Source: Schmidtea nova
Lineage: Eukaryota
NCBI GenBank assembly: GCA_044892505.1
Contig: CM097882.1
Span: 375,472,001 to 375,536,000, forward strand
Direction: 5' to 3'
Length of the DNA stretch: 64,000 nucleotides
Shown in pieces: positions 1 through 63,925 of this stretch. Below the pieces are notes generated by a model. The model did not search any database and was not told where the DNA came from. It was given only the letters and a program-made list of their open reading frames with translations. The position numbers and the translations under genes were made by a program. Numbering within the stretch: the first letter of the stretch is position 1; each line of letters opens with the position of its first letter.

Positions 1-3000
1 GTCAGCATCTCTTCATCTGTAATATCCGCATTACCCACTATTGCTGACATAGCTCTTTTCATCGATTTTATTAACGCTTCATAAACCCCTCCGAAATGTG
101 GCCCGGCTGGCGGATTAAACACCCATCTTATCTCCCGAGCTGTCAACTCCTTCGTTATCTTATAACCATCGAGTATCACATCTTTCAATTCCCCCGTTGC
201 TCCCACGAAATTATTACCGTTGTCTGATAACATCAACACTGGTTTTCCTCGTCGCGCAATGAATCTTATTAAAGCTTGTATGAATGAATCCGTTGTTAGT
301 CCGTACACTAATTCCAGATGCACTGCTCTAGTTTGTAAACATGTAAACAAACACACATATCTCTTTAGCCTCGCTTTTCCTCGGCCCTGGATTGTTAAGA
401 ATGGGCCCGCAAAATCAACCCCCACTTTTCCAAATGGTCTAAATGGTTCCGTCAATCGAAATGCAGGTAGTGGAGCCATCTTCTGGGACCGGCCAGAAGC
501 TCGTCTCTTTTTACAGATTAGGCATTCAAATTCCACCTTCTTGATTTCTCTTTTAGGTTGCGTTATCCAAAACCTTTCCTGCAGATCGCTTAATAAATGA
601 TTTGTTCCGGCGCAGTGATCTCTGTCTTGATGATATTTTCTTATTATCAGTCTAGTCACCCATCGTTTTGCACTTAATATTATCGGGTATCTTGCTTCTA
701 ATGTCATGAACTCTGCATTTATGATTCGACTGTTACTCCTGAGTAATCCTTCTTCATCGAGCATTGGATTCAAACTCAGTATTTTGCTCTTTTTATACAA
801 TGGTCTTCCGTCTTTTAACTCTCGTATCTCATCCTTAAAGATCTCATTTTGCTCCTCTCGAATTACTATCGTTTCAATCTTTTTGATTTCGTCGGTTGTT
901 AACTCCCCACTTCGGAGTTCCTTTTGGTTTCGACAATTATTTGCGAATCTATGCACCCATGCTCTTACTCTGAGCAATCTTTTCCACGATGAATAGGTTT
1001 CAGGTTGCCAACAGTTTACTTGATATTTTCCAGGTTGCTCTTCTTCTAAATTTATGACAAATGTCGCTTGCTTTCTTTCTCTATTTTCATTTACCTGTAT
1101 ATCTAATTTCGTTTTTGGCCAATTTCTTTCAAAGTGTTTTAAAAAAGGTGGTCCTTCCCACCACATATTATCTCCTATATGATCTGATGCCGACATTCCC
1201 CGAGTGGCTATATCTGCTGGGTTGCTCTTAGTAGGAACGTAACGCCATTGTTCAGCATCTGTCTCGTTCTGAATGGTTCTCACTCGGTTGGCAACAAATG
1301 TTTTCCATAGTCTTGAATGATGACGAATCCAGTGCAAGGTATCTTGACTATCAGTCCAAAACATGACATTTTTCAATTCATATTGTAACGCCTTTCCAAC
1401 TTTCTTAGCTAACTTTAGACCCAAACAGGCGCCCATCAATTCCAATCGTGGAATGCTAATTACCTTAACTGGAGCTACTTTTGCTCGTGCCGCAACAAAT
1501 TTCATTTTAACCTTGGCGCTCTCTTCTTCCCTAAGGTAACAAACCGCTGCATAGGCAGTACTAGACGCATCAACAAATACATGTAAGCGCCACGGGTTGC
1601 TTTGCTTCCCCAATAATCTCCTTGGAATCATTACTCGATTCAATAATTCACATTCTTCCATCCAACATCTCGCTCTTTTTTGTAATTCTGGGGGTAAAAC
1701 ATCATCCCACTTACTTCCCATCATCCACGCTTCTTGCATTAGGCATTTGCCAATAATTGTGAATGCACTAAGCATTCCCAAAGGATCAAAGATACGTGCT
1801 ATCCAACTTAATAACATTCTTTTCGTGATTTTCACATTGTCTGCCGTTCGTCCTTCAAATCTCAATAAATCGTCCGTTGCGAGCCAGTACATCCCCAATG
1901 TCTTCATCGTGACTGTTCTATTTTCTTCTATTGTTAACGACTTGGCTTGTTCTTCGATCGGAATTGTTTCCATTACTTTAATCGAGTTTGACATCCACTT
2001 TCTTGCCCTCATTCCTGCTTCTGCCCACAGTAACTTCAGATCCTCTTTAAGAATTAGCGCTTCTTCCTCCGTCTCTACTGAGTCAATGCTGTCATCCATG
2101 TATGTAGATTTTATTATGGTCTCAGCCGCTCTTGCGTAACTTTTTTCATATCTTCTCGCGTGTTGTTGGGTTACATATTGTGCAAGAAACGGGGACGTAT
2201 TCAACCCGAAAACTAGTCTTGAAAATTCAAATTGCACAATCTTCTCACCCTCTTTCCACAAAAATCGTAAGTAAGGTCTGTCTTCTTCCGCAACTCTTAT
2301 TTGTAGATACATTTCGGCGATATCGCTTACTATGGCCACCTTAAACCGTCTGAATCTTAACAAAATTTCGAAAAGATCATTTTGCAATTTCGGTCCCGTT
2401 TCCAAAACATCATTCAAACACTTTCCATTACATTTTGCTGCAGCATCAAATACAATCCGGACTTTCGACGTTTCTTTTTCCTTTCTTACAATGGGAAAAT
2501 GAGGTAACATCCACTTCGTTCCCACCTTTTCTTGTTCACTTAACCTCCTAATGTAATCCTTACTTTCATGATCCTTCAAAATTCTTTCATATTCCTTCTT
2601 CAACTCTTGATCTTTATCTAATTTTTGCTTTAAACTTTCTAGGCGTTTCATTGCCATTTGTGTATTATTTGATAACTCTTCTTTTCCAGATTTCCACGGT
2701 AAACTCACTTGATAAAACATTCCTCTGTTAACCATCTTTTCTTCCGTGATTTTAATAACTTCATGATCCCTTTTGGTCAAGAGCGCCGGGTTCTCCTTTA
2801 AGTTCTCGATTTCCCAGAACAACTTTACCTGTCCAACTAACTCCTCGTCCTTGGATAAATACGTTTGAACAAAGTTGGTTTGGTGGGTCAATGACACGCC
2901 CAACGTATTTCCACCTACACAGGTCCAACCAAGCGGAGTTAATCTAGCGATTGGTTCGTCCATCTTTCCATCCACTTCCTTCAGCGCTCTTTGCAAACCT

Positions 3001-6000
3001 AAATAATCAGCTCCAATAAGAACTTGCACCACTTGCCGTTCATCAAGCAATGGAAACCGTATATCCTTTAGATGTTCCCATTTCCATTTTTCCTTTGCCC
3101 AATTTATCACTCGCATTTCCCCGGTTACACTCTTCACCGCTGCAGCTGTAAACCTTTTCCTCATCTTCTGATCATAACTTATCAACGTCATCGTGACTAT
3201 TCTTGTTGTCATATTTTGAATATGACCTCCGATGACGCTGACAGGAACTATTTCCTCTTTCCCCTTCAGACCCAACTCGTCTGCAATGCTCTGACTTATG
3301 TAGCTAATGGAGCTTGCATCGTCTAACAGCGCATTTACTTTAATTTTCTTCGCTCCATGCTCAAGGTAGATCGGTATCGTCCTCAAGCTTAGGTATTTTC
3401 GCTCCCTTTTTAATAATTCATCTTTAGTAGCCGACATCAATGTGTTTTCCTTCCTTTTGGACTCTGACTGATCCACATGCAGTAGGTTACTGTGTTTCAG
3501 CTTACACCCCTCTCTAGTACAGAATGAAGCCTTTCGACATTCCGACGCTACATGATTAGACTTTAAACAATTAAAGCATAACTTCCAGTCTCCTACTGCT
3601 TTACGTCGCATTGCGGGGTTCATTTCTTTGAATTCTCTGCATTGATCCAAGTAATGATTTTCCTTGCATTTCCAACACTTCAACTTTGTGCTCAACAATC
3701 CGTCTCTTGGTATGTTTGTCTTGTCTTCCTTCCAATCTGCTACTTGCCCAACAAGTGTCCGGTTCCCTTGCCTTGGATTCCCAAGTTCTCTTGACGGTCC
3801 ATCCTGTCTCTTCCAATCGTTTCTTCTATTGCCATCCCCGACTCCATAAAGGGTTTCTCTTGTTGATCTTAACAGCTCGACTTCATCTTGTAACCAATTT
3901 CTCAAATCTTGGATACATTCGGTTACCTTTCTCTCCTTAAAGTCTTTCTTCCACTTGTATAGCAGCGAGCAGGGTAGCTTTTGCAGGCATCTCTTCAATA
4001 AGTAACTATTGTTCATTTCGCCCTCTCGTCTATTATTAATAATTCTAACTTCTAGCGTTTCCAATAGCCCAACAAACGCCTCGATTTCCAGCATTTCATT
4101 CTCACGCACGGGTCGGAACCTTTCGATATCTTCCAGAGCAGCTAAGTAATTTCGTTCTTCCCCGCCATATCTTTTATCAAGCTTTTCTTTTGCCATTTTA
4201 TAACCCGTTGCAGAAAATCCTAAATTTTCGATCAGCCTTAGCGGTTCACCTTTCAGATAGGATCGAAGGTGTAACATCTTTTCATCATCATCTCCATGGG
4301 CACTATCAACACACGTATGGAAAGCAGCTTTCCAACTTTCATATTCTTTTTGGTGTCCATCAAATATCTGGATCCGTATCTTCTGCATCTTTTCTAGTCT
4401 TTTCTTCGTTTCAGTTCCATTGATCTCTTTAATTGTATTGCTGTCATCCGACCTAACTGACTGATTGGCCTTTGACGAAATTAACTCTTCCACCTTCTCG
4501 TTCTTATTTTCTATCTCTTGTAAATCCGCTTCTAGCCCCGTTGTTGTATCTGACCTTCCTAATCTTTTACTAATATCCACCAATCTTTCAAAACTCTCTA
4601 TGGCACTTTCCATAGCTTCCTGATATTCATCAAGGACATGTGTTGCATCTTCTGCCAACATATCATTCATCCATCTGTTTCTTAATTTCGTCAATCTATA
4701 TTTGACACTCCTCTTCTTTCTCAATCCTTCCTCTAATTCCTCCTCTTCATCATTCCCTCCACACAGTCTCAGTGCCAGATGAATAGTAGACCCCTTTTGA
4801 ATGTGGTAATCTGACAGGATTCTTTCGCCTACCAATTGTTTACCTGCAAATATCAATCTCTGTTGATCAGGCGGGATTCCCTCTTTCTCTTGGATCCTTG
4901 CTTTTATTTTCTCAATAGAGTCCCCCGGTTCAACTTCCAGTGTTATGGTTTTACCTGTTAGAGTCTTAACAAAAATCTGTATTCCACGTCTCAATCGCAA
5001 AACAAAAGGTAAAGTTGACTCCATTTTCTTTTCTTTCACTCGCGAACTCTTATTCTTTAAACTTGTCCTTTCATCACCACTTGCTATTGAATAAAAACTC
5101 AATAATTCCCCTATTTTATTCATATTCGCCCTGTCTTCATGATTACCCAATTTAATATTTTTAACAATTTTATTATAGAACTTTTTATGATTACTTTTAT
5201 CTCCCCTTATTCCTACAAAAGGTTCTAAGCCTTTCAAAATTTTATCTTGTTGCAACATTTCCCGGCTGATATTCAAAGAAAATTCTTCGCTGTCATAACC
5301 AAGGCACCTACTAACATTTACACCTTTAAATACCGAATTATCTTTTACTATACATGTTGCTTCATAAGCAGGTGACACCATTTTTTCCCGGAATTTAAAA
5401 GAATGCTGGGGCCCATAGCAGCCGTCTTTCACAATATCCGGTAGCCAAAGCATTCCAACCTTCACTTCCCTTTTCAAACGCGCTTGGGAGGGAATGTTGG
5501 TCCATACCCCAATTACACATTTAAAACATTTATAAAAATTTACGCAAAACATATTAGGCTTTTTAATAAAAATATACACTAACAGGATTCCTCTCAGACT
5601 TCCAAAGTGTGCGTGGCCCCCCGGTGGGAACCACGCTCTGCTACCATTAATGTTTTTGATAAAATGTAACACTGTTTCGAGGATTTTATTATTAATCATT
5701 GTAAGAAGGTTCAGTTTGAAGAGTTCATTTGAATCATTGCGAAAGCGACATCTGTGGATTTTTGAACCAGGATTCGATATTGGAGACAATAGAGCGCTTT
5801 GACCAACATTGTGTGTCGACAGAACTGAAGGCCCCTCGTAATGAAATAACACAGTTTCGAAAATGGAAAGGTCATAATTAAAGTCATCCAATTTCACAAG
5901 TTTGGCACAATCATCAGGTTCGGCACCTGGTTTCGCAGACGAGAGTCCTTTATTTTCCGACTGAAGCATCGCACCATTTAAATTCTCCAGATCCTTCCAT

Positions 6001-6176
6001 CGGATTAGCCAGTCAAGAAATCTCTGCTCGCAATTTTCATAAGAAGCATAATCATTAATTGAATGAAATTGAGCCAAAATATCGAGTCTGGAACTCGTCA
6101 TTTGCAATTCATTCGAAGGCATCCAAAAGTTCCAATAAACTAAAAAATCCACTTTCCATACTTGCATTGACGACAT
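1..6176 (-). CDS. Extended polyprotein (>2050 aa): LTR-encoded N-terminus, unknown domain, ubiquitin, Gag, PR, RT, RNase H, IN
   Basis: Manual translation finds no stop from 6236 to the ubiquitin unit. ATG 6176, ATG 5024, protease Asp (3323), YMDD (2102) and integrase Met (50) share one frame. Absence from the ORF track is consistent with no stop before the window edge. True start codon uncertain (6176, 5552 or 5024). Confidence 0.85.
4755..4982 (-). other. Ubiquitin domain embedded in the BEL polyprotein
   Basis: [76 protein letters not shown]; 60/76 identical to canonical ubiquitin by manual count; preceded by [13 protein letters not shown] (tail of a preceding unit). Confidence 0.98.
5631..5646 (-). 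promoter_or_regulatory. Primer-binding site (initiator tRNA-Met)
   Basis: TGGTAGCAGAGCGTGG, 4 nt after the LTR-terminal CA; complementary to the 3' end of tRNA-iMet. Confidence 0.9.
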
Positions 6177-6433
6177 TTCCCGAACAAAATCCAAATTTAA
6201 AGCCTTCCGATTAAGTAAAATTTGAACGATTTCAAATCAAAACTTAAATTCCAATTATCACAATTTTAAATCTAAATTCCATCCAAACTGGAATAATAAA
6301 ACAAACGAATCTAACAATAAATTCATCTAAAAAATCAATAAAAACTCAATCAAAAATTCCAATCTAAAAATTACCCAGACTAATGCGCACACAGGCGCTG
6401 ATAAAGAAAATCAAATGCACACACAGACGAACA
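5651..6433 (-). repeat. 5' LTR of the BEL element (~780 bp; outer boundary +/- 20 bp)
   Basis: Starts TGTTCGTCTGTGTG, has AATAAA ~35 nt before the terminal CA and is followed by the PBS; partner LTR is outside the window. Confidence 0.75.
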
Positions 6434-6861
6434 ACTACATTGAATGTCACATCAATGACCCTAAATTTGCTCCAATAAAATGCTTTCAAATAGAAATCTT
6501 ACGGGCAAATCTTTGCAAAACCATTTTTCGAATGCCATACAGAGCAATATCTGCGCAAACTCTACTATGTCCAATAAATATTAATAAAACTCATTGGATT
6601 ATTTTTGTGTATTGTAAAACTTCTTTAACTTCATACTTTGTAGATCCTCTTTTCAACAACCGCCATTCGTTGACCAATAGAGCCTACGCTCTTCAAAATA
6701 CAATCGCTTTGAATCGTCTTTTTAACCTTAAAGCTGCACTATTTTTCCACCCACATAAAAACTTTGTCTACCAAAATAATAACTATGACTGTGGGCCCTA
6801 CATCTGTGCTTATGCTATGATAAAAGTGGTACATGGCAAAAATATCCTGATGATTTTATAG
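6434..6861 (+). pseudogene. Ulp1/SENP-like (C48) cysteine protease domain of the non-LTR element
   Basis: PININKTHWII (His), YFVDPL (Asp), QNNNYDCGPYICAYA (oxyanion Gln and catalytic Cys). Confidence 0.9.
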
Positions 6862-7778
6862 AACATATTAGAAAAGATGTCAATCAATTTAAACTTACTT
6901 TAAATAACATAGTCCCAAAATCATTTGGAGGTGGTGAATCTAAACTTACTAACTCTAAGAGAGTAAAAAAAGACACAACTCTAAATATTTTTAATAAACA
7001 CGACCACATCTTCCTTATGAAACGTAATGCCTGCCTCTCGTCTTTGATTACCGAATGGTTTAAAGACCATAAAGACATCTTGGTCCTGTCACAAGAACTG
7101 ACACTAAATATAATCTCTAGAAATAACTCATTTATTAGAGAAAATGTCACGTTTAAAAATTTTCTCGGGATTAACCAAGTCATCAGTGTTATCCAAAATG
7201 ATAATTACTGGTGTTTATATCTTTTTTCTATTACACATGGTGCAAGTTACTTATTTCTGACCGTTTACTTGGCATCGGAGAAAATATTACTGACTACTTG
7301 AATAAGTTCTTTCTATCAACAAACATTTCTTTTAAACCTAACCACGGCTTGGAACTGGTGCCCAATATCTCTGATGATACAATTCTCTTTGGGTCGGTTT
7401 TTATTGAGCTTCTTGAGAAATTTTGTTTAATAAAGTTATTCATTTTTTAAATATACACAATTCATTAAACTCAATAAAATTAAGGGAAACAAATGAAATC
7501 TCTCAGAATCTAAACTTACTTAATTCTAAAATTTCGGATAAAATAATTTCAATGTTTTTTGATAATTTAAATTTACCCAAGACTTTTTTATGTTGATTGC
7601 GACCATGTGCACGGCTATTCTTGACGATTGTATTCAACACATAAATGATTTTCTGAATTTTTAAAATGTATGCAAATCACAAATCATCTTTGCGATTGTT
7701 GATCCCCTTAAACATCGTGAAATTTTGCTCATTCTCGATTATAGTGTTGACACCTTTAATCTTTAAAACTCAACATCT

Positions 7779-10700
7779 TTGACTGTGAACGACAATTATC
7801 TGTCTACTTGCAAAATTCTGAAAAATAAAATAAATGGCATAAAAGATACACCTGGCCGCGTTTTGAATCTTTCTGAATGTCCCCATGACATCCGCAGCTC
7901 AGGTCTAGTTAGTAAAATTCTCTTGTGTGCGTTTATTAATAATTTTTCGAAAAATTTGCCCCTTGTAAGTTTAAACTTGCGCGAGATTGGAGACGTGGTT
8001 GGTTCTTTGCTTATCTTTGTCAGGCAGCACGATAATATAGAAAACCCAGGTAACACTAAAATTATTCATAAAACTATATTGAGCGTTCCGATAAAACAAA
8101 AGAGAAATAATGCTGAACTATTTTTAATTAAATGTGCAAATTATAGCACAAATGAAATTATTCACGCGATTATGGAGCAATTCCCTGACATAGTGAAACC
8201 AGCTAAAAAACCATACTTGGGAACCAGAATTAAAACTTATAAAATTAGCAAATATAAATTGATCGATTTATTCATGAAATATATGAAGTCAGTTGTCAAT
8301 AAGGTCATCAACAATTTCGATGTACCGGCTCGACCAACTTTTCAGAACATAGTTAAAAACTTTTCACATGAAACACCTGCACGTGGGCATTGGGAGAAAC
8401 TATTTGACTTTTGTAAACACTCTCAAAATGTACTTCCTCTGGAATGCTTCTCGAATAGGGAAGTGATGTATGAACTTAGGAGGGCTGACAACACTAGTCC
8501 TGGTATTGATGGATTACAATATCGTGACTTGTTGCGTCTAGATCCTGATGGTCAAATACTTACTTTCTTGTTCAACAAGATCATTATTTAAAAGTCCATA
8601 CCTGACAGTTGGAAGGTCTTCAAAACCGCTCTAATCCCGAAACCTAATAAAAATGATAAATATTCAAATATATCATCCTGGCGCCCGATTGCCTTGCTAT
8701 CCATCATCTACAAAGTTTTTGCGTCCTTTCTAGCCTCTCGTCTTGCACGCTGGATAAACTCTAATAAACTATTACATGTTGGACAAAAAAGTAGCTCTCA
8801 ACATGAAGGTTGCGTTGAACACAACTCGATTCTGTCTGCTGCTCTGAAACATTCCAAATATAGTAAAAACTGTCCTCTTTCCATTGCTTGGCTCGACATA
8901 AAGGATGCTTTTGGTAGTGTCTTACATGATTACATGTGGTCCTTACTCCGATACACTTGGGTAAGTGAAGACTTTACCTCCATCTTACAACTTTTATATT
9001 CTGACACGAGCTACTTCTATAATTGTGGTCCTATTCTGACACCAAACATCCCAATTAAAAAGGGTGTCAAGCAAAGATGTCCCATCTCCATGATTTTGTT
9101 TGCTTTGGCGATTAATCCTGTGTTGGAAGCTGTTTCCAGAACAGTATTGTTGGGTATTTTGTTGAAAGTCGGTTCTAATTTCTGACTCCTGGTGTTCTTT
9201 TAACAAATAATCAACCCAACACAATAACCTTTATTTCAATATCATACTTTATCACAATGATTGAACAATATAAGAACTGTCTTTTCACACGGAACTTAAC
9301 TGCTTTCAAGTCACTTGCTGCGAGGGATAAGTCTCCCAACGGAAGATCTCCCTTTCTGGTGCGCAAACAAATGAATTAAATTTTACTCTACAACACTACC
9401 TTTTCGGACTCTTCTTCTAATTTTAATCGGTTCATTTTGAAATCTTATCTCTTCGACCCCTGGCCCCACATTGCAATTTGCTTCTGCTTTTATAGTGCTT
9501 CCTCCTTGATGCTTGATTGTTCTGTCTCCCAATTTTGACATTTTCATCTACGACTCAAATTAAACTGTCATATTGTAATTTAGTAGCTCTCGCCGTTTCC
9601 ACATCCTTAGAGCAAATTGAACTGTCACTTCGCTTGAGCGGGTTTCTCTCCTCTCTCGGGCTCTCCATTGGCTCGGGTTTCCCATTGTCTCGGGCTTTCC
9701 ATTAGCCAATTAATTCTTAATTAATATTTTAAATTTTAAATTGTTTCTTTCTGGGGACCCCCCATCGATTTTATTTTTATTTATTTGAATTCGTCTCATA
9801 ATTTGGCACACACCCATACCAATTTCTCCCATGATATATTAATTTTAAATTTTATTAATTTTTTAATTAATGTTTTAATATTTGGTGATTTTTGCAATTT
9901 TACTAATTTTATTACTTTTAAATTTTGAGTCACTTTGACAAACCCCAACAGTATGTGATGCTTTTGCTATTGGAGAATCATCTGTCAAAATTCTCGCGTA
10001 TGCTGATGACATCGCAATTTTCGCTAAATCTCCTAATGACCTGCAAAACTCATTAATACTGCTGTCACAACTGCAACCAATATTAACTTTGAATATCGGC
10101 CAGAGAAATGTGCTTATCTGCAACTTCCTAGAATTCACATTGACAGTGAAATTTCAATCAATGGCGTTAAAATTAAAAAACTGCTGTCTAATGAATTTTA
10201 TCAATACTTAGGTGTGCCAGTTGGCGAAGGAACTGACCAAAGTCCTTATGACATTCTATTAGAGGCACTCAAAGACACCAAAACACTTGCTGATTCGGAT
10301 TGGCTTGGGTGGCAAAAACTTAAAGCTTACAAAATATTTATCCATTCTCGCTTGATCTTCCCTTTTAGAACCCGTGAAATTAAAACTAGCGCACTTTCAA
10401 AATCTTATAATAATAAACATCTTTCAATTAACATCACTAGCCAGTTAAGGAAACTCTTAAGAAAAATGCTGCTTTTGCCTAATCACTCGGAAGTGAGTTA
10501 TTTCTACAATTCAACTGAAAATGGGGGAGCAAACTGTGTTGATCTTCTCGACGAATATCACACACAGACTATCACACACTTTTTTTCGATTAATCACGTC
10601 ACAGTGTGACTTTGCAAGGAAAATTAATCTTGACTCTTTAGCTTTTGTAACCAGTCCACGTCTTGGGATAAAAAATCCAACTCTTCAGGAAAGTCTTGAT

Positions 10701-11650
10701 TGGCTCAATGGAAAAGAGTCTCTTTCCCCATTCTGGAAAGAAAACTCGATTTCAAAGAGCTAGGATTGCGATTGCTTTTTTTGAGAAGACGCACGACATC
10801 AACATCACCTTTACTATCACCAATAATGTACCATGGCTCTATATTAACACGAACGCACGTGGTACATGTATCGTAACTCCGGACGAACGAGAGACCATGG
10901 TAAAAGTGTTGCACTTAGCGCTCAATGATTCATACTTGGTTAAATGGGAAAAAAGCTGTGTCTCAAACATTATCGCTTCAGCTGTAAAGCTTTCACCGAT
11001 AGTAAACAAAGCTATCTATCGCAGTGATTTATCCGAGATTGCTTGGAACTTTGTCCATAGAGCACGCAGCAACACTCTTTCCACCCTTGCAAAGCCTTAT
11101 AATAGTGGAGAGAAAAGACTCTGTCATCGATGTCATGATGAGGATGAAACCTCATCACATGTACTTCAATCGGGCAAAGTTCATATGACTTTGGGCTCTG
11201 AACGACACGATGCTTGCCTTAAACTCATTTCTAATCATCTCCAACTTAATAAAAACCTAATTGTTGTTGTAAATCATGCCTGTTCACTTGTTCCGAGTTC
11301 TAAAGAGCAGGTGGATTTGCTGATAACTGATGTTCTTAGAAAAAGAATCTTCCTTGTTGACATTAAATGTCCGAGTGATTTCTCATGTAACCTTGAGCAT
11401 GTAAATTTATTGAATTTGGAAAAATACAACTCTCTGAAAATCGATATTCAAGCTGCCAAGCCAGACTTTAAAGTTGAACTCGATACTTGCATTATAGGCG
11501 CTCTTGGCTCTTTTCCTGTAGAAACTTCTCAGGTCCTTCAGAAAATTGGCATAACTAAAGGCCAAGTGGCTGGGTTATTAAAAAAGTGAGCAATTAGTAA
11601 TATTACACACTCGGCAAAACGATGGTACACTGCCCATTTTCGACAATGAG
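7779..11650 (+). pseudogene. RT / zinc finger / restriction-like endonuclease of the non-LTR element
   Basis: ORF fragments 7779-8591, 8694-9147, 9955-10070, 10214-10609, 10696-11589; RT rejoins as EAVSRT|VCDAFAIGESSVKILAYADD across the solo LTR. Confidence 0.9.
9148..9950 (-). mobile_element. Solo LTR (803 bp) inserted in the RT
   Basis: TGTTGGG...CCCAACA termini, 4-bp TSD GTAT; TATA-like and AATAAA on minus strand. Confidence 0.9.
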
Positions 11651-11804: not shown

Positions 11805-13893
11805 AAAAATTTATTTCCTTTTCCTTTTTTTATTTTTGATAACAATTACTTTACTTTGCTAAATATTTTTTTTAATTTAAATTAAAAGTTTGAAATATCA
11901 TAACTTTGTTTAAATAATCTCTTTTAATTTTTCTCGTTTCAAAAATGATTGCAACTCAAACTCAAATGCCTAATGGTGAATGTAAATTTGGAGATGAACA
12001 ATGTGTTCTCTCCTCTCGTGTGGATGAGCTTGTTATTTTTGGAGGGTTTATTTTTCTTGATTCACTTTTATTTACCTTTTTTTCTTTCCTTTCTTAATTA
12101 TTTCTTATTTACTACTTCATTTTGTTTATGAATTTCTATCTTTGACCTGAAAACATCTTAATTAAAAACTCTTTTGCCCCCTTTTTCTTGACGTTTTGCT
12201 TCGGTGAATAAAACTGTTTAGCTCAATCAAAAGGAAATTTTAGCCTTTAAAAAAAACAACCAGATAATTATTGTACATTTTCGAATACTTCACATAATCT
12301 GGATTTTGCTGATCAAAGAGAAACTTAACAAGAACAGAAAAGCCAGAATTAACAATAGAACACCTCACTGATTCCGATTGTTCTAAATCAAAGAAAAGTT
12401 TATCCAATATTGCAATGCCGGAATCCAAATCCGATGAAGAACACATTAACTGCCAGGGACAATACAGGCAAATTCGAGTGACAATCGAGTCGAGAATACC
12501 CAGAATATATCCAGATATTTCAGACTCTTCTGCCCTAGAATATTGTCAGTATGGAATGCTCCATGTTGAGCTATGTCCCATTAGAAAATTATCATATTTT
12601 ATTGTAATAAAATTTATTATGTTATAAATATATAATATAAATATTGTATTTATTTAAAAGGTCAAATCATTTACATATTAATTGTATGACCACAACAACA
12701 TCTTTCCCGGAGATTATATATTGATGTGTGTTTACCCTAGCAACATCTTCCTTTAAGATTATATAGATGTGTGTGTGTGTTTACCCTAGCGACCGGTGCT
12801 ATGTGAAAAAAGTGGTGCAGTGCGCTCACTATCACCTACTTAAGTGGTCACAGTCTTTTGTTATTTTTTATAATAACCGTCCAGACATGATTGTTTACGT
12901 TTGTTCATTTTTTAAATGATTGAATTATTAAAACACAATTGTCGTGCTATAATATTAAATTATTATGTTAGAAATTTAAAAAATCTTTATCCAGCCTGAT
13001 CAGAGTTTACTTGATTATTGCTCAAAATAAATAGAACTAAAGTCAGCCATAAACGTAGTAAATTCAGAATTAAATTTATTCTGAATTTACTACGTTTATA
13101 TCTGTCTTCAGTTTCATGTTTGAGTTCGCGATTTAGTATGTTAAAATAAGTAATATTCAAATAATTTAACCATTTTAAATAAAATAGTTAAAAAATTAAA
13201 ATTAAGTTTTTACTCTTTCATAGACCGATGCAGGTTCACGGACCACCACTTTAAGATCCACTGATTTATATGATAAATTTGTAAAATATAAAATGTTGAT
13301 ATTTATTTGATAATAATTTGGCAATTGTGATATTCAATGTGATCTAGGGTAGCAGAGATTAAGTTATTTGGTATAATTGACAAATGCTTTCCAATGAAGG
13401 CTGTGAGGATATTTAGACATGGTTATTAGCGAGCATTAAAATTAAAATTAAATCATTATTTGTAGATAGTTAAAATAAGTTTTAAATGTTTAATTAAAAA
13501 TATTTCCAAGTTGATCCGTCTATTAAAGATTATAGAGAAAGACTTCGGATAGCTTTTAAAAAAAGACCACGATAACGCAGGTTATTAAAGCCGCGTTTGA
13601 ATATTGGCAAACGAATGAAGAACCAGAGATTTATTTTGGAAAAATAAAGAGTCTTGTGGACAAACTTATGAGTCATGAATGAACAGCAGAAAATTAGAAG
13701 AACAGCTATTAGGTACATTGTTCCGCGGAAAAGAAGTTGAGAATGAAATTATGGTCAGATGAAATCGGAGGTACAGAAGAAATAAAAAAGAAGATCAAGA
13801 AATTACACGAAGTTAGGAAAATGAGCGAAGAGATTTACGCGGTAAAGGAACGAATACCAGAAGGAGATAAAAAGAAGCTATAAAGAGGTCACC

Positions 13894-14529
13894 ATGAAAA
13901 ATAATAGATATGATGAACCAGGAAATAGAACCAGACGATATAGAGAGAACGTAATTCAAGATAATAATATTATAAAATGCTTTTGTTTCGGGGGTCAAGG
14001 CCATGTAGAAAGGGAATGTCCAAACAGACAACGAAGAAATATCGAGTGTTATGGATGTGGACAACAGGGACATACCCAGAGAGAATGTCCAAATAGGCAG
14101 CGAAGAATTATTTCATGTTATTCATGTGGAAAACAAGGCCATATCCAGAAAGATTGCTTGAATAGACCAAAAAGAGTCGTTACATACTATACATTTGGAG
14201 TAGAAGGACACGTAAGTAGAGATTGTAAAAAAGTCAGATGTCAAAGATGTGGATTAGGAGGTCACTGGGCAGAAGAATGTTACACAAATCTGAATAGGTT
14301 GAAACAAAACATGACAAATAGAGATAACAGACAACAAAAAGGAAATTACGAAATGGAAACAACGAAAGGAAGAAGAAATTACAATGGAACAAGGACCTAT
14401 CAAGATACACACAATGGACAAGTTGCATATATAAGAAGTGAAAGTTATGAAGACGATGAAGAGAGGTTCTCTAGTGCCCCAAATGAGAGGGTCCCGACAA
14501 GAGAGGACGTTGTCGGGGCGGTTTTTTAA
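13894..14529 (+). pseudogene. Gag nucleocapsid region with five tandem CCHC knuckles
   Basis: CFCFGGQGHVEREC, CYGCGQQGHTQREC, CYSCGKQGHIQKDC, YYTFGVEGHVSRDC (degenerate), CQRCGLGGHWAEEC. Confidence 0.88.
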
Positions 14530-14761: not shown

Positions 14762-17350
14762 ATGAAAGGTAGACCTAGTGTGTTAATCAAAATCCCAAAT
14801 CAAGAAATGGATTGTTTACTTGATTCAGGGGCAACGGTTAACGTTATGAGTTGGAACCAGTATAAAAAATTTTATAATATTGAATTGATGAAAACGGCAA
14901 GTGTTCTAAGATGTGCAAATGATAAAGTATTGGAAACAAAAGGTAAAGAAATGATGAATGTTGAAATAATAGGAATATACAAAGTGGTAAGGTTCACGAT
15001 TGTGAACCACATAACACCAGAAGTGATTTGGGGGTATAGAGTTGTGGAAACAATTTGGATTTCAAATACAATGGCCTCAGAAAGAGATAAAAACAATGAA
15101 TTATGAACACATGTGTAATATCGAAGCAAAGTTTGGAAAACTGATAACAGGAACAGAAAGATAACAGAGCAAAAAGCATTAAAAGTAAACGATGCGGTAT
15201 TAATAGAAATTATAAGGAATAATCAGGATGTTTTTATGGTAAACAAATGGAACATCGGATGCACAACTTTGCTAAAACATAAAATAGATACTCAGGGGAA
15301 TCCAATAAATATCAAGCCACGAAGACAACCAGTTCATTTAGAACCAAAGATTGAGGAGGCAATACAGAATCTTTCTGAAAATGGAATTATTAAGAAATGC
15401 AATTCATCGTGGAATACGCCACTGGTTTGTGTCTGGAAAAAAGATAAACAAGACATCAGATTATGTCTAGATTTCAGACAGTTAAATTTAGTTACAAATA
15501 GACAAGCGTATCCAATGCCAAATATAGCGGAGATATTGGATAGATTGGAAGGAGCAAAACATTTTACGTCAAAAGACCTGGGAAATGCATATTATCAGGT
15601 TAAACTTAAAGAAAATTCAAAAGAAAAGACGGCATTTTCAACCACGACGGGGCCAGAAACATTTCAGGAGTTAATGGGAAAAGTACTAGGCAACATAAAA
15701 GGTACAACTGTTTATTTGGATGACATTTTAGTATTCACAGAGACAAAAGAGCAAAATTATATGGTTCTGAAAGAGGTATTAGGAAGAGTTAGACTAGCAG
15801 GGTTGAGAATAAACCCAGAAAAATGTCATATACTGGTTCGAGAACTAAAGTTCCTTGGGCACATTGTAAACAAGGATGGTATACAAACAGACCCATCAAA
15901 ATTAGAAGCAAAAAAATCATTCCAGAAGCCGAAATTTATAAAGAATCTAAGGAGTTTTTTAGGGATATGTAAGTATTATAGAAGGTTTATCAAAGACTAT
16001 GCCAAGAAAGCTAAAACGTTGGAGGAATTAAGTGGAAAAAACAATGTAAAGTTAATCTGGACAGAAAACTGCGAAAGGACCTTCGAAGAAATGAAGAAAG
16101 CACTAACAGAATCCCCTGTTTTAGGATACCCAGATTTTACAAGAGAGTTCATCCTAGATACAGACGTCAGTTTTGATACAATTGGGGCTGTACTATCACA
16201 AAGAGATGATAATGGTTACGAAAAGGTTATAGGATATGGGTCACACGCGATTAGTAGTCATGAAAAGGGTATTGTATTACGAGAAGAGCTGCTTGCAATT
16301 TACTACTTTTGTCATCATTTTAACCACTACCTGTACGGCAAAATTATTTCCAAAAAAAAGTACAAAGCAATCACGTTCATGCTATCCACAAAAAGCCAGT
16401 AACTGCGCAATTTCAAACATGGATCAACCATCTCAGTAGTCTAGACATTAAAATGGAATACAGAAAGGGAGTGAATCACGCAAATGCCGATGCATTGTCA
16501 ACAAGTACCTGTGGAACTTGTACACAATGTCTCTTGAATCACGAGAATGCAAAGACCGAGAAAATGAAAACACGGTGTATAAACATGATAAAGAAAACGG
16601 AACGTTGTAAATGGTAACAAGATGATGAAGAAATAAAACAAATAAAGGAAGATATAGCACAAGGGTTATGCTGGAAATACATATTGAAAGAAGGGGTAGT
16701 AACGACCAAGGAAGGAAAAATATGGATTCCGAAAAATAAGAAACGGGAAATGATAAAAGAAATGCACGGATTACTATCACACGCAGGAGCTGAAAAAGTG
16801 ACAAAATATATAGCTGATCATTATGATATGAAGGATATAAAAGAATAGGTGAAAGAAACAATTAGAGCTTGTGAACCATGTCAAAGGACAAAGGTTGTTA
16901 CGACATAAACGAAGGAAGAGACAATTAAACTTAAGGCAATTTAGGACAATAAGAGATTATGTAAACGCATCATTAAAAGAAGGTAATCGAACAAGTTGGT
17001 CAGGTATATTGTCAGAAATTGAATTTACATTAAACGCAACATTTCAAAAGACAATTGGGAAGAGTCCTGCTGAAGTGGTATTTTGTAGGAAAATATTCAG
17101 AGAACGATGGTACAGTAAGAAACCGGAAGAGCATGCCATAGAAAAACCACATGAGGAAATTGTCACTAGGAGAGAGTTTAAAATTGGAGATTCGGTACTA
17201 GTAAAAGTCGAAACTAGATCCAAAGACAAAGACAGATACGAAGGCCCATACGAAGTGATTCAGAAGATACATGACAGACGATATACGTTATGGGACGAAA
17301 ATGGAAGATTGATTCAAAAGAATGTAGAGAAGATGAAAGAATTTTTTAAA
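14762..17350 (+). pseudogene. Gypsy pol (protease, RT, RNase H, partial integrase)
   Basis: LLDSGAT, RLCLDFRQLN, YLDD, FILDTD, H..H..CEPC, YEGPY; deletions in RT (TTTG^PETFQ) and in the integrase core. Confidence 0.92.
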
Positions 17351-42898: not shown

Positions 42899-43012
42899 GG
42901 GTATTGATAAAAATTAAAATGAATATTTTTATTGATAAAAATTAAAATTCTTAAATTCCAGAATTTAAATAAAATTTATATATTTGCTTCAATCGATGAG
43001 CTTATTGATAAA

Positions 43013-44881
43013 ATGCCTTCGTTGTTTAAAAGACTTACGGATTCATTAAAACGGACTAAACCAAAACCTAGTTCTCCTATAATATTAAATGTAACTACCC
43101 CAAACAGTGATCACGGTGAAGCCATATCACCATCTTCCTCTAACATCACATCAATAACGTCCTTGGGAAATCCGACAATAAAAGTTAAATCAAAGTTTTT
43201 AAGCAATAAAAGTTTCATGAACAATAATTCTGATTCCGAGAGATATTACGAAACTTGGAAAATGGGGGACAATAATCCTAATGAAATAAGCGTAGTAAAC
43301 TGTTTGTCTGGTTACAGTAAAGAGATCTACTCTAACGATACAATCAAATCCTATTTAAAACAGGAATCAGAATTCGAAAATCAGAATTCATCAACGCCAG
43401 CTCAAAATGACATCAATTCAAATATAAAATTGAAATTATTGGCTGACCATGAAAATTTACTTCAGAAAAACAAGAAAATACGAAAACGGTATGAAAAGGC
43501 AAAAAGTCTGAATGATTTATTGAAAGCCGAAATTGCGGAATTGGAAGCTGTAAACAAAAGACTTACTTCTGACAACGCAGAAACCCTTCATGAGGCCATA
43601 AAGCATCGGTTTTTGAAATTAGAATCGGAAGACCTTTCGAAAAAAACAGACCAATACAAACAAAAACTCGAAGAAAAAGAAAATCTAATTGTGAAATTTC
43701 AAAAACAATTCGAAAACATTCGAATGAAAAGTACTGAGGCCTACAAATTAAAAGAAGAGGCTCAACTGGAAGCCTCGCATTCCTGTGTGAAATTGAAAGA
43801 ACTGACGAATGATTGCGCAGAATTAGATATCTACAAAAATGAGAACGCTCAGAAACGGTTCTTTTTCAATGAATTGCAAAATATCCTGGGAAATGTGAGA
43901 GTTTATTTGAAAATCAAACCAACGGTCGGAGAATCGTGCATTTCATTTATGGGTGACGATAAAGTTTTATTGAAAACAACAAATAATAAAGAAAAACAAA
44001 TAATTTGCCAGTTTACTCAAGTTTTTCAGCCTCAAGTAAGTCTTAAAGAAATATTCGAAGACTACGAACCTTTATTAATGACCGTTGTCGATGGATACAA
44101 TTGCAGTTTTATCAATTATGGACAAATAGGAAGTGGGAAATCTTTAACTTTATTCGGTGAAGATAACAATCCGGGAATTTTGAGTAATTCTTTGCGCTAC
44201 TTGTTATCGACAACCGAAGAAAGCACGAATTGTAAATATAGCATTTCATTGTCGGCAGTTCAAATAAACAAAAATAACATTTTCGATATCTTTCGAAGGA
44301 AGCAAGTAAACATAGTTGACGATGGTCATAACTTGATTTTACGGAACAATGATGAACGAGTTTTGAATAATATCACTCAATGCAATGAAATTGTTCGGCT
44401 AATCGAGTTGAATAAGGATTCTTTAAAACCAGTCCCTAATAGTTACAGGACATTTACGCACTTGGTAATTATTGTAAGAGTTATTGGTACTTGTAAATTA
44501 AGTCATAAGAAAACATGCGGAATTGCAATGTTTTGTGAATTAGCTGGATTTGAAAACGAAAATAATTTAAAGTTCTCCGAAAGAGATTACTTAAAAGAGG
44601 AAAAACTCGTTCAAGAGAGTCTCATTGATCTTGGGAAAAAACTCGTAACTTTAAAAGGAAAAGTGAGAAAAACGACTCGACCTTTGTCAATTCTAACGAA
44701 AGTTTTACAACCATGCTTAACAAAGAATTCGAAATGTGTTTTATTTATCCATTGCTTGAGTGACTCTGAAGAGCGGTATGCTATAACGAAATCAATTCAG
44801 TACGGTTTAGCAGTTATGCCAAAATTGAAAACACATCAGCCGAAACATTTAATTCAGTGGGATTTTGGTGATGATAAATAA
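43013..44881 (+). CDS. Intronless C-terminal-motor kinesin (kinesin-14-like), 622 aa, divergent catalytic motifs
   Basis: Low-complexity N-terminus, coiled coil, neck FNELQNILGNVRV, VDGYN, P-loop YGQIGSGKS, ELAGFE, LTKVLQPCL; first ATG at 43013. Confidence 0.92.
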   Translation: MPSLFKRLTDSLKRTKPKPSSPIILNVTTPNSDHGEAISPSSSNITSITSLGNPTIKVKSKFLSNKSFMNNNSDSERYYETWKMGDNNPNEISVVNCLSGYSKEIYSNDTIKSYLKQESEFENQNSSTPAQNDINSNIKLKLLADHENLLQKNKKIRKRYEKAKSLNDLLKAEIAELEAVNKRLTSDNAETLHEAIKHRFLKLESEDLSKKTDQYKQKLEEKENLIVKFQKQFENIRMKSTEAYKLKEEAQLEASHSCVKLKELTNDCAELDIYKNENAQKRFFFNELQNILGNVRVYLKIKPTVGESCISFMGDDKVLLKTTNNKEKQIICQFTQVFQPQVSLKEIFEDYEPLLMTVVDGYNCSFINYGQIGSGKSLTLFGEDNNPGILSNSLRYLLSTTEESTNCKYSISLSAVQINKNNIFDIFRRKQVNIVDDGHNLILRNNDERVLNNITQCNEIVRLIELNKDSLKPVPNSYRTFTHLVIIVRVIGTCKLSHKKTCGIAMFCELAGFENENNLKFSERDYLKEEKLVQESLIDLGKKLVTLKGKVRKTTRPLSILTKVLQPCLTKNSKCVLFIHCLSDSEERYAITKSIQYGLAVMPKLKTHQPKHLIQWDFGDDK

Positions 44882-60051: not shown

Positions 60052-61631
60052 ACGGATAACTCCAAATAGTATGAGTCATATTATTTAATAATATGACCAA
60101 AAAACAAAAATTCCTTACGTGGTTAAGTAAATTAGTCATACTATTTGAATTTAAAGAAATATAAAAAACATAATTGTATTTTTAATCATTCGTCAGCAAG
60201 ATCAAATACATTTGGTTCAAAATCATACTCGTTCCGAGTTGGTGTTGAATCTTCAAATATCGAATTAATAAATTCGTTTCGGAATCTCTCACCATAAATA
60301 TCATGTTTAGATATATGCCAATCCTCGAAATTCTCCGAAAACCCAGCTGATTGAATAGAGATTTTTAAGTTTTGGATAGACATAGAGCTCCAAGCATTAC
60401 TAATCCAAAGATTCACAAGCCCTTGGCTGGGAGCCTTGGGATTTCCACATCTTGTGTATTATATTTCCTCGGAGTTTTTCCAAATATTAATAAAACTGGA
60501 AATTCTGTCTTTAAATTCTTTAAAAATTCCAATATCTCCTGCTTGTAAATAGGGGGTTAATGTGCCGGGTATTACCACAAGTTTTATATTTCTTTTTCTG
60601 CAGTGCTCTTTTACACGTTCTGAAATATGAGCACGAAAAGAATCCCATACAATACATTTTCCTTGACTAGCGTCAAACATTGGAAACATTAAATTTATCC
60701 ATGCCATTATTAAATCTTGATTTATCCATGCTTTTTCTTGTGTAACGCTATAAATATTGTTGAGCGAATTAATATTTGCAAAAGAATTTTTTCCTTTGTG
60801 AATAGCAAGAGGTACAGCTTTTTTTCCATTAGCCCAAACTGACACAATTACTGTTATTCACATGGAAGAAAACCCTGTTGATTTCATTATTACATGTCTC
60901 CGTCCTTTTAAACCAACTGTATGGGTCTTATTATCTTTGAAATAAACAGCTGTTTTATCCATTAACAATGTTTTCGACAAGTCAACATTAGGGATCGTAG
61001 GTCTTAAAAAACCCATATAATTAATGGCACGGGAAATTAACGTATCATCAGATAAATTCGTAAAGTTGGTTGTTCTTCTAAACGACAGTCCATTTCTTTT
61101 CATGAAACCGTCAATCCAGCGGCCTGAAGCTTTGATGTCAATATTATTTTGTTCTCCTAATGTAATAGCTCGATTGGATATGAAAGTTCGAGTAACTTTT
61201 ATTTTCATTATTCTTAATCCAATAATTTCATCAAAAATTAATTCTTCAAGAGATCCTAGCAAAGGCTTTCTTCCGCCTCCAGACGCTCTTTTCATCGATG
61301 CAGATTGTGCTTCTTTGTTCTTATACCACTGCTGAAACATAGATTGACTATACGAGCAACTATCTCTGTCGCCGAAAAGGTTGTTTGCCTTATAACATGA
61401 ATTTTCGAGCTCCATATATGAAATCACTTCTTTCTTAAAAGCAATTGTAAATGTTCTTTTTTTCATTGGGGTGATTTAAAGAAAAATTTATTATAGAAAT
61501 TGTATTATTGATATAAAAGAATTTTAAAAAATCATTAAATATTAATGGTCATACTATTTATTAGTATGACTTTTTATAAAAAAGAAATGATCATATTATT
61601 AGGAATAGTAATATTATATGGAGTTATCCGT
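60052..61631 (-). mobile_element. pogo/Tigger-like Tc1-mariner DNA transposon, full length
   Basis: TIR ACGGATAACTCCA, TA TSDs, subterminal GTCATA repeats. Confidence 0.92.
60186..61466 (-). pseudogene. pogo transposase (CENP-B HTH plus DDE) with two in-frame stops
   Basis: GGGRKP, ASGRWIDGFMKR, MDKT, VWDSFRAH, TPYLQAGD; three ORF pieces share a frame. Confidence 0.92.
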
Positions 61632-61834: not shown

Positions 61835-63925
61835 TAGGGCTTGCAATACCGGATCAAATTTTCAAAACCGGTATTTCGGTATTTCATTATATTAATACCG
61901 GGATCCCGGTATTAATACCGGTATTTAAGAAAAAACAAAAAAAAAGCAAAACTACATTGCAAAAAATAGAAAAAAATATATTTATAAAGAAAATAAAATA
62001 TTTAATTCAATAACGAATAATTCGAAAGAATAAACTTTTTTTTAAAGTGCCACAACAAGATTTGCCTTTAAAATATGCCCTCAAAAATGTTAAACTATCA
62101 AGAGTTTTGTCGCTTAAGCTGGATCGAATTTTTGTGCACAACAGCCCTGCTGCTGAAAAGGCTCTTTCGGACTCGACGCTAATTGGTGGTATGGACATAA
62201 GGCAGTCATATACTAGTTGAAGATATTTTCCTCTAATATGTTCTACTTCGAAGTATGCTAGTTCCTGTTTTATAACTTTATAAAGTACTTTAGAATTCAT
62301 CATTTTTGAAATTCCACTCGCAGTCTTCATCACATTAACTTTCTTGGAAATTGCCATTTCTAGTTTTTCTTTCATTGTCATCGAACTTAGAATTTCTGGC
62401 TCAGAATCAGCAGATAACTCAGAAACGTCGATGGAAGAGGCTCCTATGTTTTCAATATCGATGACATCGATAGCATATAAGCGTTCCAATAAATTTATAA
62501 TTATTTTTATAATTGTTGCGTTGTTAATTCAATTAAAAATTTCATTTTGGTCGTCATCTGCTGATTCAGTAGGATTGTGCAGGTATTGTAGTAGACTCGA
62601 TAAATCAGTACGCCTTTGTTTTATACGAATAATTAGCTCTTCTTTGAATTCATTACTTAAAGCAGCATTCTGTTCTGTCAATTGATTAAACATAAATAGT
62701 AAAGCTGCATCTGCGCTAAGAAGAGTAGCATCTTGACGACAACAAGCTTCAACAGTTAATTTGATTGGAAGAAGAACTGAAATAACTGATGATGCTAAAG
62801 AAAAATCAATTTCTGAAAATGATATTTCGCCATTTAAATTTAAATCAATCAAAGCCTTTTGTATGCAGTTCTTTAACTGGACAAAGCGTTCTAGCATGGC
62901 AAGTAAGCTATTCCAACGTGTTTTAGAATCTAGAATTAAATTCAGTTCCTTTCCAAATTGTTCTTTAACATGTTTCTGTAAAGCTTTATCATTTTTCATT
63001 GGCGAACGTCTGAATAGCTTCACAACTTTTCTTATTTTTTTAATCAATGGACCTATCTGTTCATGAATAATTAAACAGTCAATTGCATTGTTTTCTTGAA
63101 GTATGGCTAAACTATTATCATCAAGATCACTATCATTTTCATCACTTGTATACTGGTTATCATCTTCGTTACAATTAGAATGTTCATTTTCTAAATTTTG
63201 GTGTATCATATTTATATATAAAACCTTAATGACAACCAATTGAATTCCGTGAACTAAGCAAAGTTGTTTCCTTGCACAAATCAACTTTCCAACTTTGGTC
63301 ATGACAGATGCACCATCGGTTGTAATGCACACAATGTGTTTATTTAAAGAAACTTGGAATAATTTAAGCTTTTCTTCAACGAGGGCAACACACTTTTCTG
63401 CAGGCAATGATCCTTGCACGCGAACTAATCCTAGGTTCCAGAATTTCTTGATGCCAGCATGAACATTTATATTTAAATAACGTCGGTTTTTTACCGATGT
63501 CCATTCATCAAATGTAAGACTAAATCGTTGTCCTGAAAGAATTTGAGATTCTAACTCTTTAATCATATTTGCACGAATTTTTTCACTGTACTGCACAACT
63601 AAATTTTTTATAGAGTTTATAGATTTTGGTATATTTTCATACCCTCTGGCAGTTAAACCTTTTCTGATATCCACGGAAGTGCAAAATATGTTAAACGACA
63701 AACCGTCACATGCCGTCATACGAGCTAAAACTGCAGACAAAGAATTGTCCGTTTCCGAAACGAAAAATGTTGTTATTTTCCCGCTAGAAACTTTGTTCAC
63801 TTTAGAAGTTGATGGTTCTGGCTCAATTTCAATCAAGAGGTTGGAGCTCGGAGCATTCCTTTTTTAAAAATTAATTTGGTGGAGTGTCTTTAGGTGGGTA
63901 TGCAAACCACTTGTACTACCTCTTT
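61835..63925 (-). mobile_element. hAT (hobo-like) transposon; one end seen
   Basis: Terminus TAGGGCTTGC with ACCGGTAT subterminal repeats; transposase upstream. Confidence 0.88.
62007..63836 (-). pseudogene. hAT transposase, one in-frame stop and frameshifted BED-finger remnant
   Basis: SLTFDEWTS, TTDGA, CLVH, TRWNS, SVESERAFS; STSGLHTHL remnant at ~63900. Confidence 0.92.

Follow-up and report, generated by a model that had tools for sequence, protein, structure and literature searches.

A ubiquitin unit captured ahead of Gag in an apparently undescribed BEL/Pao retrotransposon lineage, and its possible cleavage by host deubiquitinases

The present study deals with a BEL/Pao retrotransposon in a 64,000-nucleotide stretch of Schmidtea nova DNA (GenBank assembly GCA_044892505.1, contig CM097882.1, positions 375,472,001 to 375,536,000 of the forward strand; the whole stretch is called the window in the following, and its first letter is position 1). 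The element carries a complete ubiquitin in frame immediately ahead of its Gag. Judged from the sequences compared here, this ubiquitin is an old and selected feature, because distant relatives carry it at the same place, too. We consider it reasonably probable that the element is a member of an undescribed BEL/Pao lineage, in which host deubiquitinases cut Gag-Pol free from a translated leader after the GG of the ubiquitin.

A first-pass annotation, made from the letters of the window alone, had reported an intact ubiquitin-Gag-Pol frame without stating its strand. The frame is indeed present and lies on the minus strand, while the plus-strand reading of positions 4700-5024 contains stops throughout and was rejected. 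A fragment of the HSP90 middle domain, a 13-residue ubiquitin tail and a 76-residue ubiquitin ending in GG are followed by Gag, protease, reverse transcriptase, RNase H and integrase, all in one open reading frame (ORF) with the following features:

3-6236, minus strand: single stop-free frame of 2078 codons, without breaks in its visible part, which exits the low end of the window within the integrase
5025-5297, minus strand: fragment of the middle domain of cytosolic HSP90, about ORF residues 314-404, directly upstream of the ubiquitin tail
4983-5024, minus strand: M405 and the 13-residue tail of a preceding ubiquitin unit, the GG of which is now RG
4755-4982, minus strand: full ubiquitin unit, ORF residues 419-494, with I at position 1 and the C-terminus LRLCGG, then N-D-E-E-E-E and Gag
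3537-4754, minus strand: Gag, with an acidic start directly after the GG, three long predicted helices and DUF1759 at 3930-4364
3639-3677 and 3537-3578, minus strand: two CCHC knuckles in Gag
3132-3374, minus strand: aspartic protease region with an LLDD[AG]S motif, a weak Pfam match; the motif is common to ten relatives
1347-2354, minus strand: reverse transcriptase and Pao signature (RVT_1 2007-2354, YMDD 2091-2102, Peptidase_A17 1347-1826)
498-653, minus strand: zinc-binding HHCC domain of the integrase, after which the frame runs on to window base 3

Since the frame leaves the window within the integrase, the 3' part of the element and its 3' long terminal repeat (LTR) lie outside. On ORF residues, Pfam finds HSP90 (315-404), ubiquitin (421-491, E = 7e-27), DUF1759 (625-769), a weak Asp_protease_2 match (966-1018), RVT_1 (1295-1410), Peptidase_A17 (1471-1630, E = 2e-46) and Integrase_H2C2 (1862-1913). 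The assignment to BEL/Pao made in the first pass is thereby confirmed: Peptidase_A17 is the Pao signature, the domains stand in BEL/Pao order, and YMDD, HHCC and both CCHC knuckles are in place. It was also considered that the window copy has an aberrant protease active site; this idea was rejected, as the motif is the norm in the family. Collectively, the window element is an apparently intact BEL/Pao retrotransposon. Neither a second copy nor a solo LTR was found within the window, where the frame matches only itself.

The ubiquitin unit matches Pfam PF00240 with 93 bits against a cut-off of 25.4, and 60 of its 76 residues (79%) are identical to host-type ubiquitin. As claimed previously, L8, I44, K48, K63 and the terminal GG are retained in the alignment, and the frame reads RG for the upstream GG and I for M1. 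The proposed origin from a polyubiquitin message was likewise supported, because the C-terminal tail of a preceding unit is joined head-to-tail to the next unit, and an alignment with PDB entries (query residues 2-90) spans the unit boundary of polyubiquitin chains. An AlphaFold2 (AF2) model of residues 405-800 displays the beta-beta-alpha-beta-beta-beta grasp, a low-confidence tail at the GG and then a long helix, which is consistent with an exposed and flexible GG junction.

The ubiquitin is not private to the window copy, since at least ten distant relatives possess a ubiquitin at the same place before Gag. A search with the Gag and protease region (Gag-PR) identified two full-length ubiquitin-bearing relatives, P0002 (39% identity) and P0003 (33%), encoded on contigs L001 and L002, respectively. 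The called ORF of a third match, P0001, begins inside a ubiquitin; on its contig L003 the polyprotein is spread over three called ORFs, the upstream one of which, taken by itself, contains the N-terminal part of the unit, and two frames of this contig were entered as separate rows. An exhaustive search with Gag only, covering 1.84 billion cluster representatives, added P0058, P0059, P0064, P0068, P0085 (contig L004) and P0126 with ubiquitin as well as P0061, the called start of which is a remnant of the ubiquitin C-terminus. In P0085, the unit is preceded by a shorter, tail-like remnant of 8 residues. The stand-alone Gag-PR query returned no named ubiquitin-Gag protein, and a search with region 405-640, which includes the ubiquitin, was swamped by polyubiquitins, with no retroelement among the 120 matches listed. 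The relatives' contigs are metagenomic and come from four different samples with GC contents of 35-43%, hence several hosts are likely.

In all ubiquitin-bearing relatives the unit ends about 130-150 residues ahead of DUF1759, and at the point where this clade has the GG, ubiquitin-less relatives have Met and about 15-20 residues. Gag identity in the 11 ubiquitin lineages is 27-57%, the closest relative of the window element being P0058 with 57%. On the basis of 19 Gag sequences and 293 columns, a neighbour-joining tree separated the 11 ubiquitin-bearing from the 8 ubiquitin-less sequences in 100 of 100 bootstraps. Moreover, the ubiquitin units have derived states in common: I1, G20, K25, I26, G64, I67 and A70 occur both in the window and in P0126, I1, G64 and I67 also in P0085, and G64 and/or I67 in several further lineages. 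Host ubiquitin is nearly invariant. The derived states common to the units of the elements argue for one capture and not for repeated captures, hence the sequences point to the descent of the ubiquitin from one old event.

The unit has not evolved neutrally since then. Over the 76 ubiquitin codons compared between the window and L004, the proportion of nonsynonymous differences (pN) is 0.20, far below the saturated proportion of synonymous differences (pS) of 0.91, which indicates purifying selection. The identity to host ubiquitin ranges from 80% in P0068 down to 24% in P0003, and Pfam still detects the ubiquitin fold in P0002 and P0003 at 24-29% identity (36-37 bits). In an alignment of 8 sequences, no ubiquitin columns other than L73 and G76 are invariant, and G75 is kept in nine of ten lineages, with P0058 as the exception. 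K63 and even K48 drift across lineages. Directly after the GG, the ten lineages have N, S, S, S, N, M, G, G, M and Q, and in no case Pro. Deubiquitinases require L73 and the GG, and proline is the sole following residue that they are known not to accept. The pattern of conserved positions thus fits cutting after the GG by host deubiquitinases. The GG ahead of the unit is kept in no lineage, so the unit would remain joined to whatever precedes it. The first-pass annotation had suggested that R74C may slow the cleavage; this change is of minor importance, since residue 74 is not constrained in the family (C, Y, R, R, K, R, Q, R, K and K across ten lineages).

According to the mechanism that we propose, an ancestor of the lineage would have copied a piece of an HSP90 mRNA and a tail-plus-one-unit piece of a polyubiquitin mRNA between the primer-binding site (PBS) and gag, and the ubiquitin would have been kept since this capture as the last module ahead of Gag. 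Translation would begin ahead of the ubiquitin, with an ATG of the LTR shortly before the PBS as the probable start, and would pass a leader that is set by RNA signals, i.e. the PBS and a hairpin with a palindrome in its loop, and by hitch-hiking host fragments. Host deubiquitinases would cut after the GG of the ubiquitin during synthesis of the chain, whereby Gag-Pol would be freed with its own N-terminus and the leader would remain on the ubiquitin.

The region upstream of the ubiquitin had been regarded in the first pass as one leader protein of about 470 residues. This view could not be maintained, as its first 196 codons or so represent the 5' LTR, which is followed by the PBS, an RNA hairpin and the HSP90 fragment. 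Besides the HSP90 fragment, this region contains:

5651-6262, minus strand: putative 5' LTR; its 3' end (…ACA) follows from the position of the PBS, which lies four bases farther downstream, its 5' end (TGT at 6262) is a guess
5629-5646, minus strand: PBS of 18 nucleotides (nt), common to L001 and L002; its first 12 nt occur also in L004
5401-5426, minus strand: leader RNA hairpin with an 8-bp stem and a 10-nt loop (5409-5418) containing the palindrome GGGCCC

In L001 both LTRs are present and the 18-nt stretch adjoins the 5' LTR, therefore it is regarded as the PBS. Its position implies that ORF residues 1-196 of the window element are the 5' LTR read in frame. The putative LTR can be read in the polyprotein frame from 6236 onwards and contains AATAAA at about 5686-5691 and 5952-5957. 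The PBS is presumably the complement of the 3' end of initiator tRNA-Met; tRNA genes, which were sought in the window for this assignment, were not found there. The loop of the hairpin corresponds to an 11-nt motif, which reads C-Y-G-P-Q in frame and recurs in four elements. Outside the window, the hairpin is located at about 4229-4262 in L001, 807-840 in L002, 111-144 in L003 and 441-474 in L004. The stem differs in every element, and 8 of 8 pairs are changed on both sides. The covariation amounts to 0.84, compared with 0.29 in shuffles (0 of 500 reached it) and 0.11-0.29 for slid partners. The palindrome GGGCCC in the loop suggests that the hairpin is a candidate kissing-loop signal for dimerisation or a packaging signal. 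Two other interpretations of this region were dropped. The leaders are not homologous between lineages, as only C-Y-G-P-Q is common to them and is explained as the RNA hairpin loop, and the conserved ATG in the loop is not the true start, because it opens an out-of-frame ORF of 22 codons in the window. Pfam gave no matches for the LTR-coded part, the part from the PBS to HSP90 and the leaders of L001 and L002, and a PDB search with window residues 1-313 gave none, either.

The leader is probably translated, as indirect but concordant observations suggest. In each of the four elements with a visible PBS, the polyprotein frame runs through it and extends without stops 197, 32, at least 136 and 75 codons farther upstream, while the other two frames contain stops. 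Three elements have an in-frame ATG, 18, 28 and 10 codons ahead of the PBS; the one in the window is M180, with A at position -3. In most lineages ubiquitin position 1 is not Met, hence translation must begin upstream of the unit. In addition, the tandem repeats of L002 (30 nt in the LTR, 3-318; 54 nt in the leader, 574-735) are multiples of three and stop-free in the polyprotein frame, and the captured host pieces are all in sense orientation and in frame, which also makes translation of the leader probable. The translated leader of the window element would begin at an in-frame ATG, with candidates from M180 to M405.

The HSP90 fragment was detected by Pfam (E = 2e-17, profile positions 184-282 of 518) and by a phmmer search of the PDB (E = 1e-20). 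Apart from one 9-residue gap, it matches residues 389-487 of human HSP90-alpha. It comprises just some 90 residues of the middle domain and neither the N-terminal ATPase domain nor the C-terminal dimerisation domain, hence it represents part of a gene and no chaperone, and there is no evidence for a function. P0085 harbours another HSP90 fragment (L004 about 505-705), which corresponds to human residues 487-555 and is located directly before its tail remnant and ubiquitin unit. The window element and P0085 fall in different subgroups of the clade in the Gag tree. The simplest reading is a longer ancestral HSP90 piece that was trimmed differently in each lineage. No HSP90 trace was found in any frame of L001-L003, and HSP90 halves concealed in a different frame of L001-L004 or the window were also sought without success. 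The leader of P0002 contains instead fragments of a kinesin and of the Sec23 trunk and beta-sandwich, again sense and in frame. Furthermore, the polyprotein of the 1016-residue P0061, which has a Gag of the ubiquitin clade, also includes two CCCH zinc fingers and a coiled-coil piece of CFAP58, which again indicates that coding fragments of hosts accumulate in this lineage. The window itself contains at 42923-44878 on the plus strand an intronless ORF of 652 residues with a kinesin motor and a microtubule-binding domain, which is of the C-terminal motor type. It is of the same kind as the kinesin fragment of P0002 but only 38% identical to it, and hence is not directly connected with it.

These captures allow the proposed mechanism to be taken one step further. 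The lineage might translate through its own RNA leader, with the captured ubiquitin serving as a host-cleaved insulator that always releases a clean Gag. Such an insulator design would free the 5' leader to gain host fragments and would explain why HSP90, kinesin and Sec23 pieces are found sense and in frame. We offer this extension tentatively, as a possibility that is somewhat short of probable.

Several points weigh against the proposed cleavage of a translated leader. The relatives all stem from metagenome contigs with one copy each. P0058, the closest relative of the window element, has EG in place of the GG. In L001, in-frame stops separate the open stretch next to the PBS from the main ORF in the same frame, so a continuous leader is either not universal or the L001 copy is defective. 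P0003 and P0068, the units of which begin with Met, might be translated from this residue without any leader. In the window, the frame is open across the whole presumed LTR including the expected U3, which is not explained by translation of the element's own transcript. The HSP90 pieces of the window and P0085 abut at human residue 487 without overlap, a coincidence that is left unexplained by our proposal. Finally, while architecture, descent and selection can be read from the sequences, the cut, its enzyme and the start codon are deduced by comparison.

Different explanations for the persistence of the ubiquitin have to be weighed against its cleavage. The ubiquitin could stay uncleaved as an N-terminal domain of Gag that docks to ubiquitin-binding host machinery such as sorting and budding factors or the proteasome. 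In this regard it is noteworthy that the hydrophobic patch is mostly kept, with L8 as L, I or M and I44 as I, L or V, and that the fold is retained even at 24-29% identity. Stable ubiquitin-like domains usually lack L73, G75 and G76; exactly these best-conserved residues would be needless for permanent docking. Drift in P0002 and P0003 affects K48, K63 and large parts of the surface, and the tail at the GG is predicted to be flexible and exposed, which makes a docking domain rather unlikely in our opinion. It might also be that the released product matters, i.e. an extra or leader-tagged ubiquitin with a free GG that becomes conjugated to Gag or host proteins. The GG would be exposed once cut, and the units of the window, P0068 and P0085 share 72-80% of their residues with host ubiquitin and keep K48. 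R72 is important for recognition by the activating enzyme, and position 72 varies across the ten lineages (R, N, R, R, R, K, G, K, R and S). Since no upstream GG is kept, an N-terminal extension would always be present, and the units of P0002 and P0003 are just 24-29% identical to ubiquitin. Such a conjugatable product appears quite improbable.

Another proposal, which goes back to the first-pass annotation, is that the cut exposes an Asn N-degron and thereby sets the half-life of Gag-Pol. Asn follows the GG position in the window and P0058 and Gln in P0001, but S, G or M is found there in seven of the ten lineages. As the residue after the GG is not conserved, an N-degron cannot be why the module persists; it could matter in the lineage of the window, and as a general explanation it is most improbable. 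Alternatively, ubiquitin and HSP90 may be functionless passengers of template switching, which are kept since a stop or frameshift would kill the polyprotein. This is in line with the leaders, which otherwise cannot be aligned between lineages, contain host fragments without relation to each other (kinesin and Sec23 in P0002, HSP90 in the window) and have no detectable HSP90 in L001-L003. However, a constraint against stops alone would not explain a pN of 0.20 at saturated pS, nor would it preserve the fold, L73 and the GG in 11 lineages with only 27-57% Gag identity. Hence, the passenger explanation is contradicted for the ubiquitin and very improbable for the insert as a whole, while it is quite plausible for the HSP90, kinesin and Sec23 pieces. 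A 2A-like peptide as separation device was rejected, because NPGP occurs nowhere in the 2078-codon frame.

The surroundings of the element are rich in transposons, with 31% GC and nine N runs in the window. Another retroelement (6331-11586, plus strand) abuts the BEL/Pao LTR in opposite orientation and contains an ORF with a Ulp1/C48-like peptidase match (6331-6858) and an RVT_1 ORF (8592-9182). The position of a gene for a SUMO/ubiquitin-like protease beside a ubiquitin-fronted element is probably a coincidence. Gypsy-type pieces are located at 13846-14526 and 15119-16399 on the plus strand and comprise a Gag with two CCHC knuckles and an ORF for reverse transcriptase and RNase H. On the minus strand, ORFs with a match to the helix-turn-helix of Tc5 transposases (60861-61475) and a weak DUF659, hAT-like match (62532-63863) were found.

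A search of the full-text literature, which did not cover Repbase, Dfam and GyDB, gave no prior description of a ubiquitin-Gag fusion in BEL/Pao or any other LTR retrotransposon. The word ubiquitin occurs 0 times in the main BEL/Pao survey (de la Chaux and Wagner 2011, PMC3118150), and no such fusion was found in PMC6431247 and PMC13534243. With its DUF1759 and CCHC Gag, protease, reverse transcriptase, Pao signature, integrase, putative LTR and PBS the element resembles other BEL/Pao members (Belpaoviridae; PMC3118150). It differs from ordinary relatives in having the leader, ubiquitin and GG where those start Gag with their own Met. The element is therefore a conserved and apparently undescribed variant of BEL/Pao.

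Parallels to the arrangement exist in different systems. In natural ubiquitin fusion genes, i.e. polyubiquitin and the eL40 and eS31 fusions, a GG-ending ubiquitin is also placed in frame before a downstream protein, and such fusions occur among the PDB matches. They are cleaved by host deubiquitinases while being translated or shortly thereafter. In contrast to these fusions, the ubiquitin of the element is not N-terminal, follows a variable leader, mostly lacks Met1 and has a retroelement polyprotein as partner. Cytopathic pestiviruses have captured ubiquitin inserts into their polyprotein by RNA recombination, from which host enzymes create a new N-terminus. Those inserts, which we compare by description only, are recent, specific for strains and found in an RNA virus, whereas the insert described here is old, clade-wide and placed before Gag in a retrotransposon. 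Ty1 of yeast, a member of Ty1/copia, starts translation in the LTR, has a PBS of the initiator tRNA-Met type and carries the PBS and the signals for RNA packaging and dimerisation inside the gag frame. The N-terminal residues of Ty1 stay on Gag, while the ubiquitin would let the BEL/Pao element discard them. Moreover, 2A-like peptides have been reported in the N-terminal region of ORFs of non-LTR retrotransposons (Odon et al. 2013, PMC3708506; Luke et al. 2013, PMC3894237). They resemble the ubiquitin as host-executed separation devices near the N-terminus of an ORF that uncouple the upstream product, a role that is inferred for the ubiquitin here. The 2A peptides act by ribosome skipping instead of proteolysis and belong to another class of elements.

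The ubiquitin-fronted lineage is of interest beyond the single copy in Schmidtea nova. The combination of ubiquitin, DUF1759 and Peptidase_A17 in a single frame can be used as a flag in annotation, and the elements provide a concrete model for the capture of host coding fragments by retroelements. For the covarying leader hairpin, no such dimerisation or packaging signal was found described for BEL/Pao in the literature searched. The family also separates the needs of cleavage (L73, G75, G76 and the fold) from the needs of signalling, which drift. Polyprotein processing in LTR retroelements is generally attributed to the protease of the element itself. Hence, a first cut by host deubiquitinases, if true, would represent a new processing strategy for LTR retroelements and a natural, old counterpart of the ubiquitin inserts in RNA viruses.

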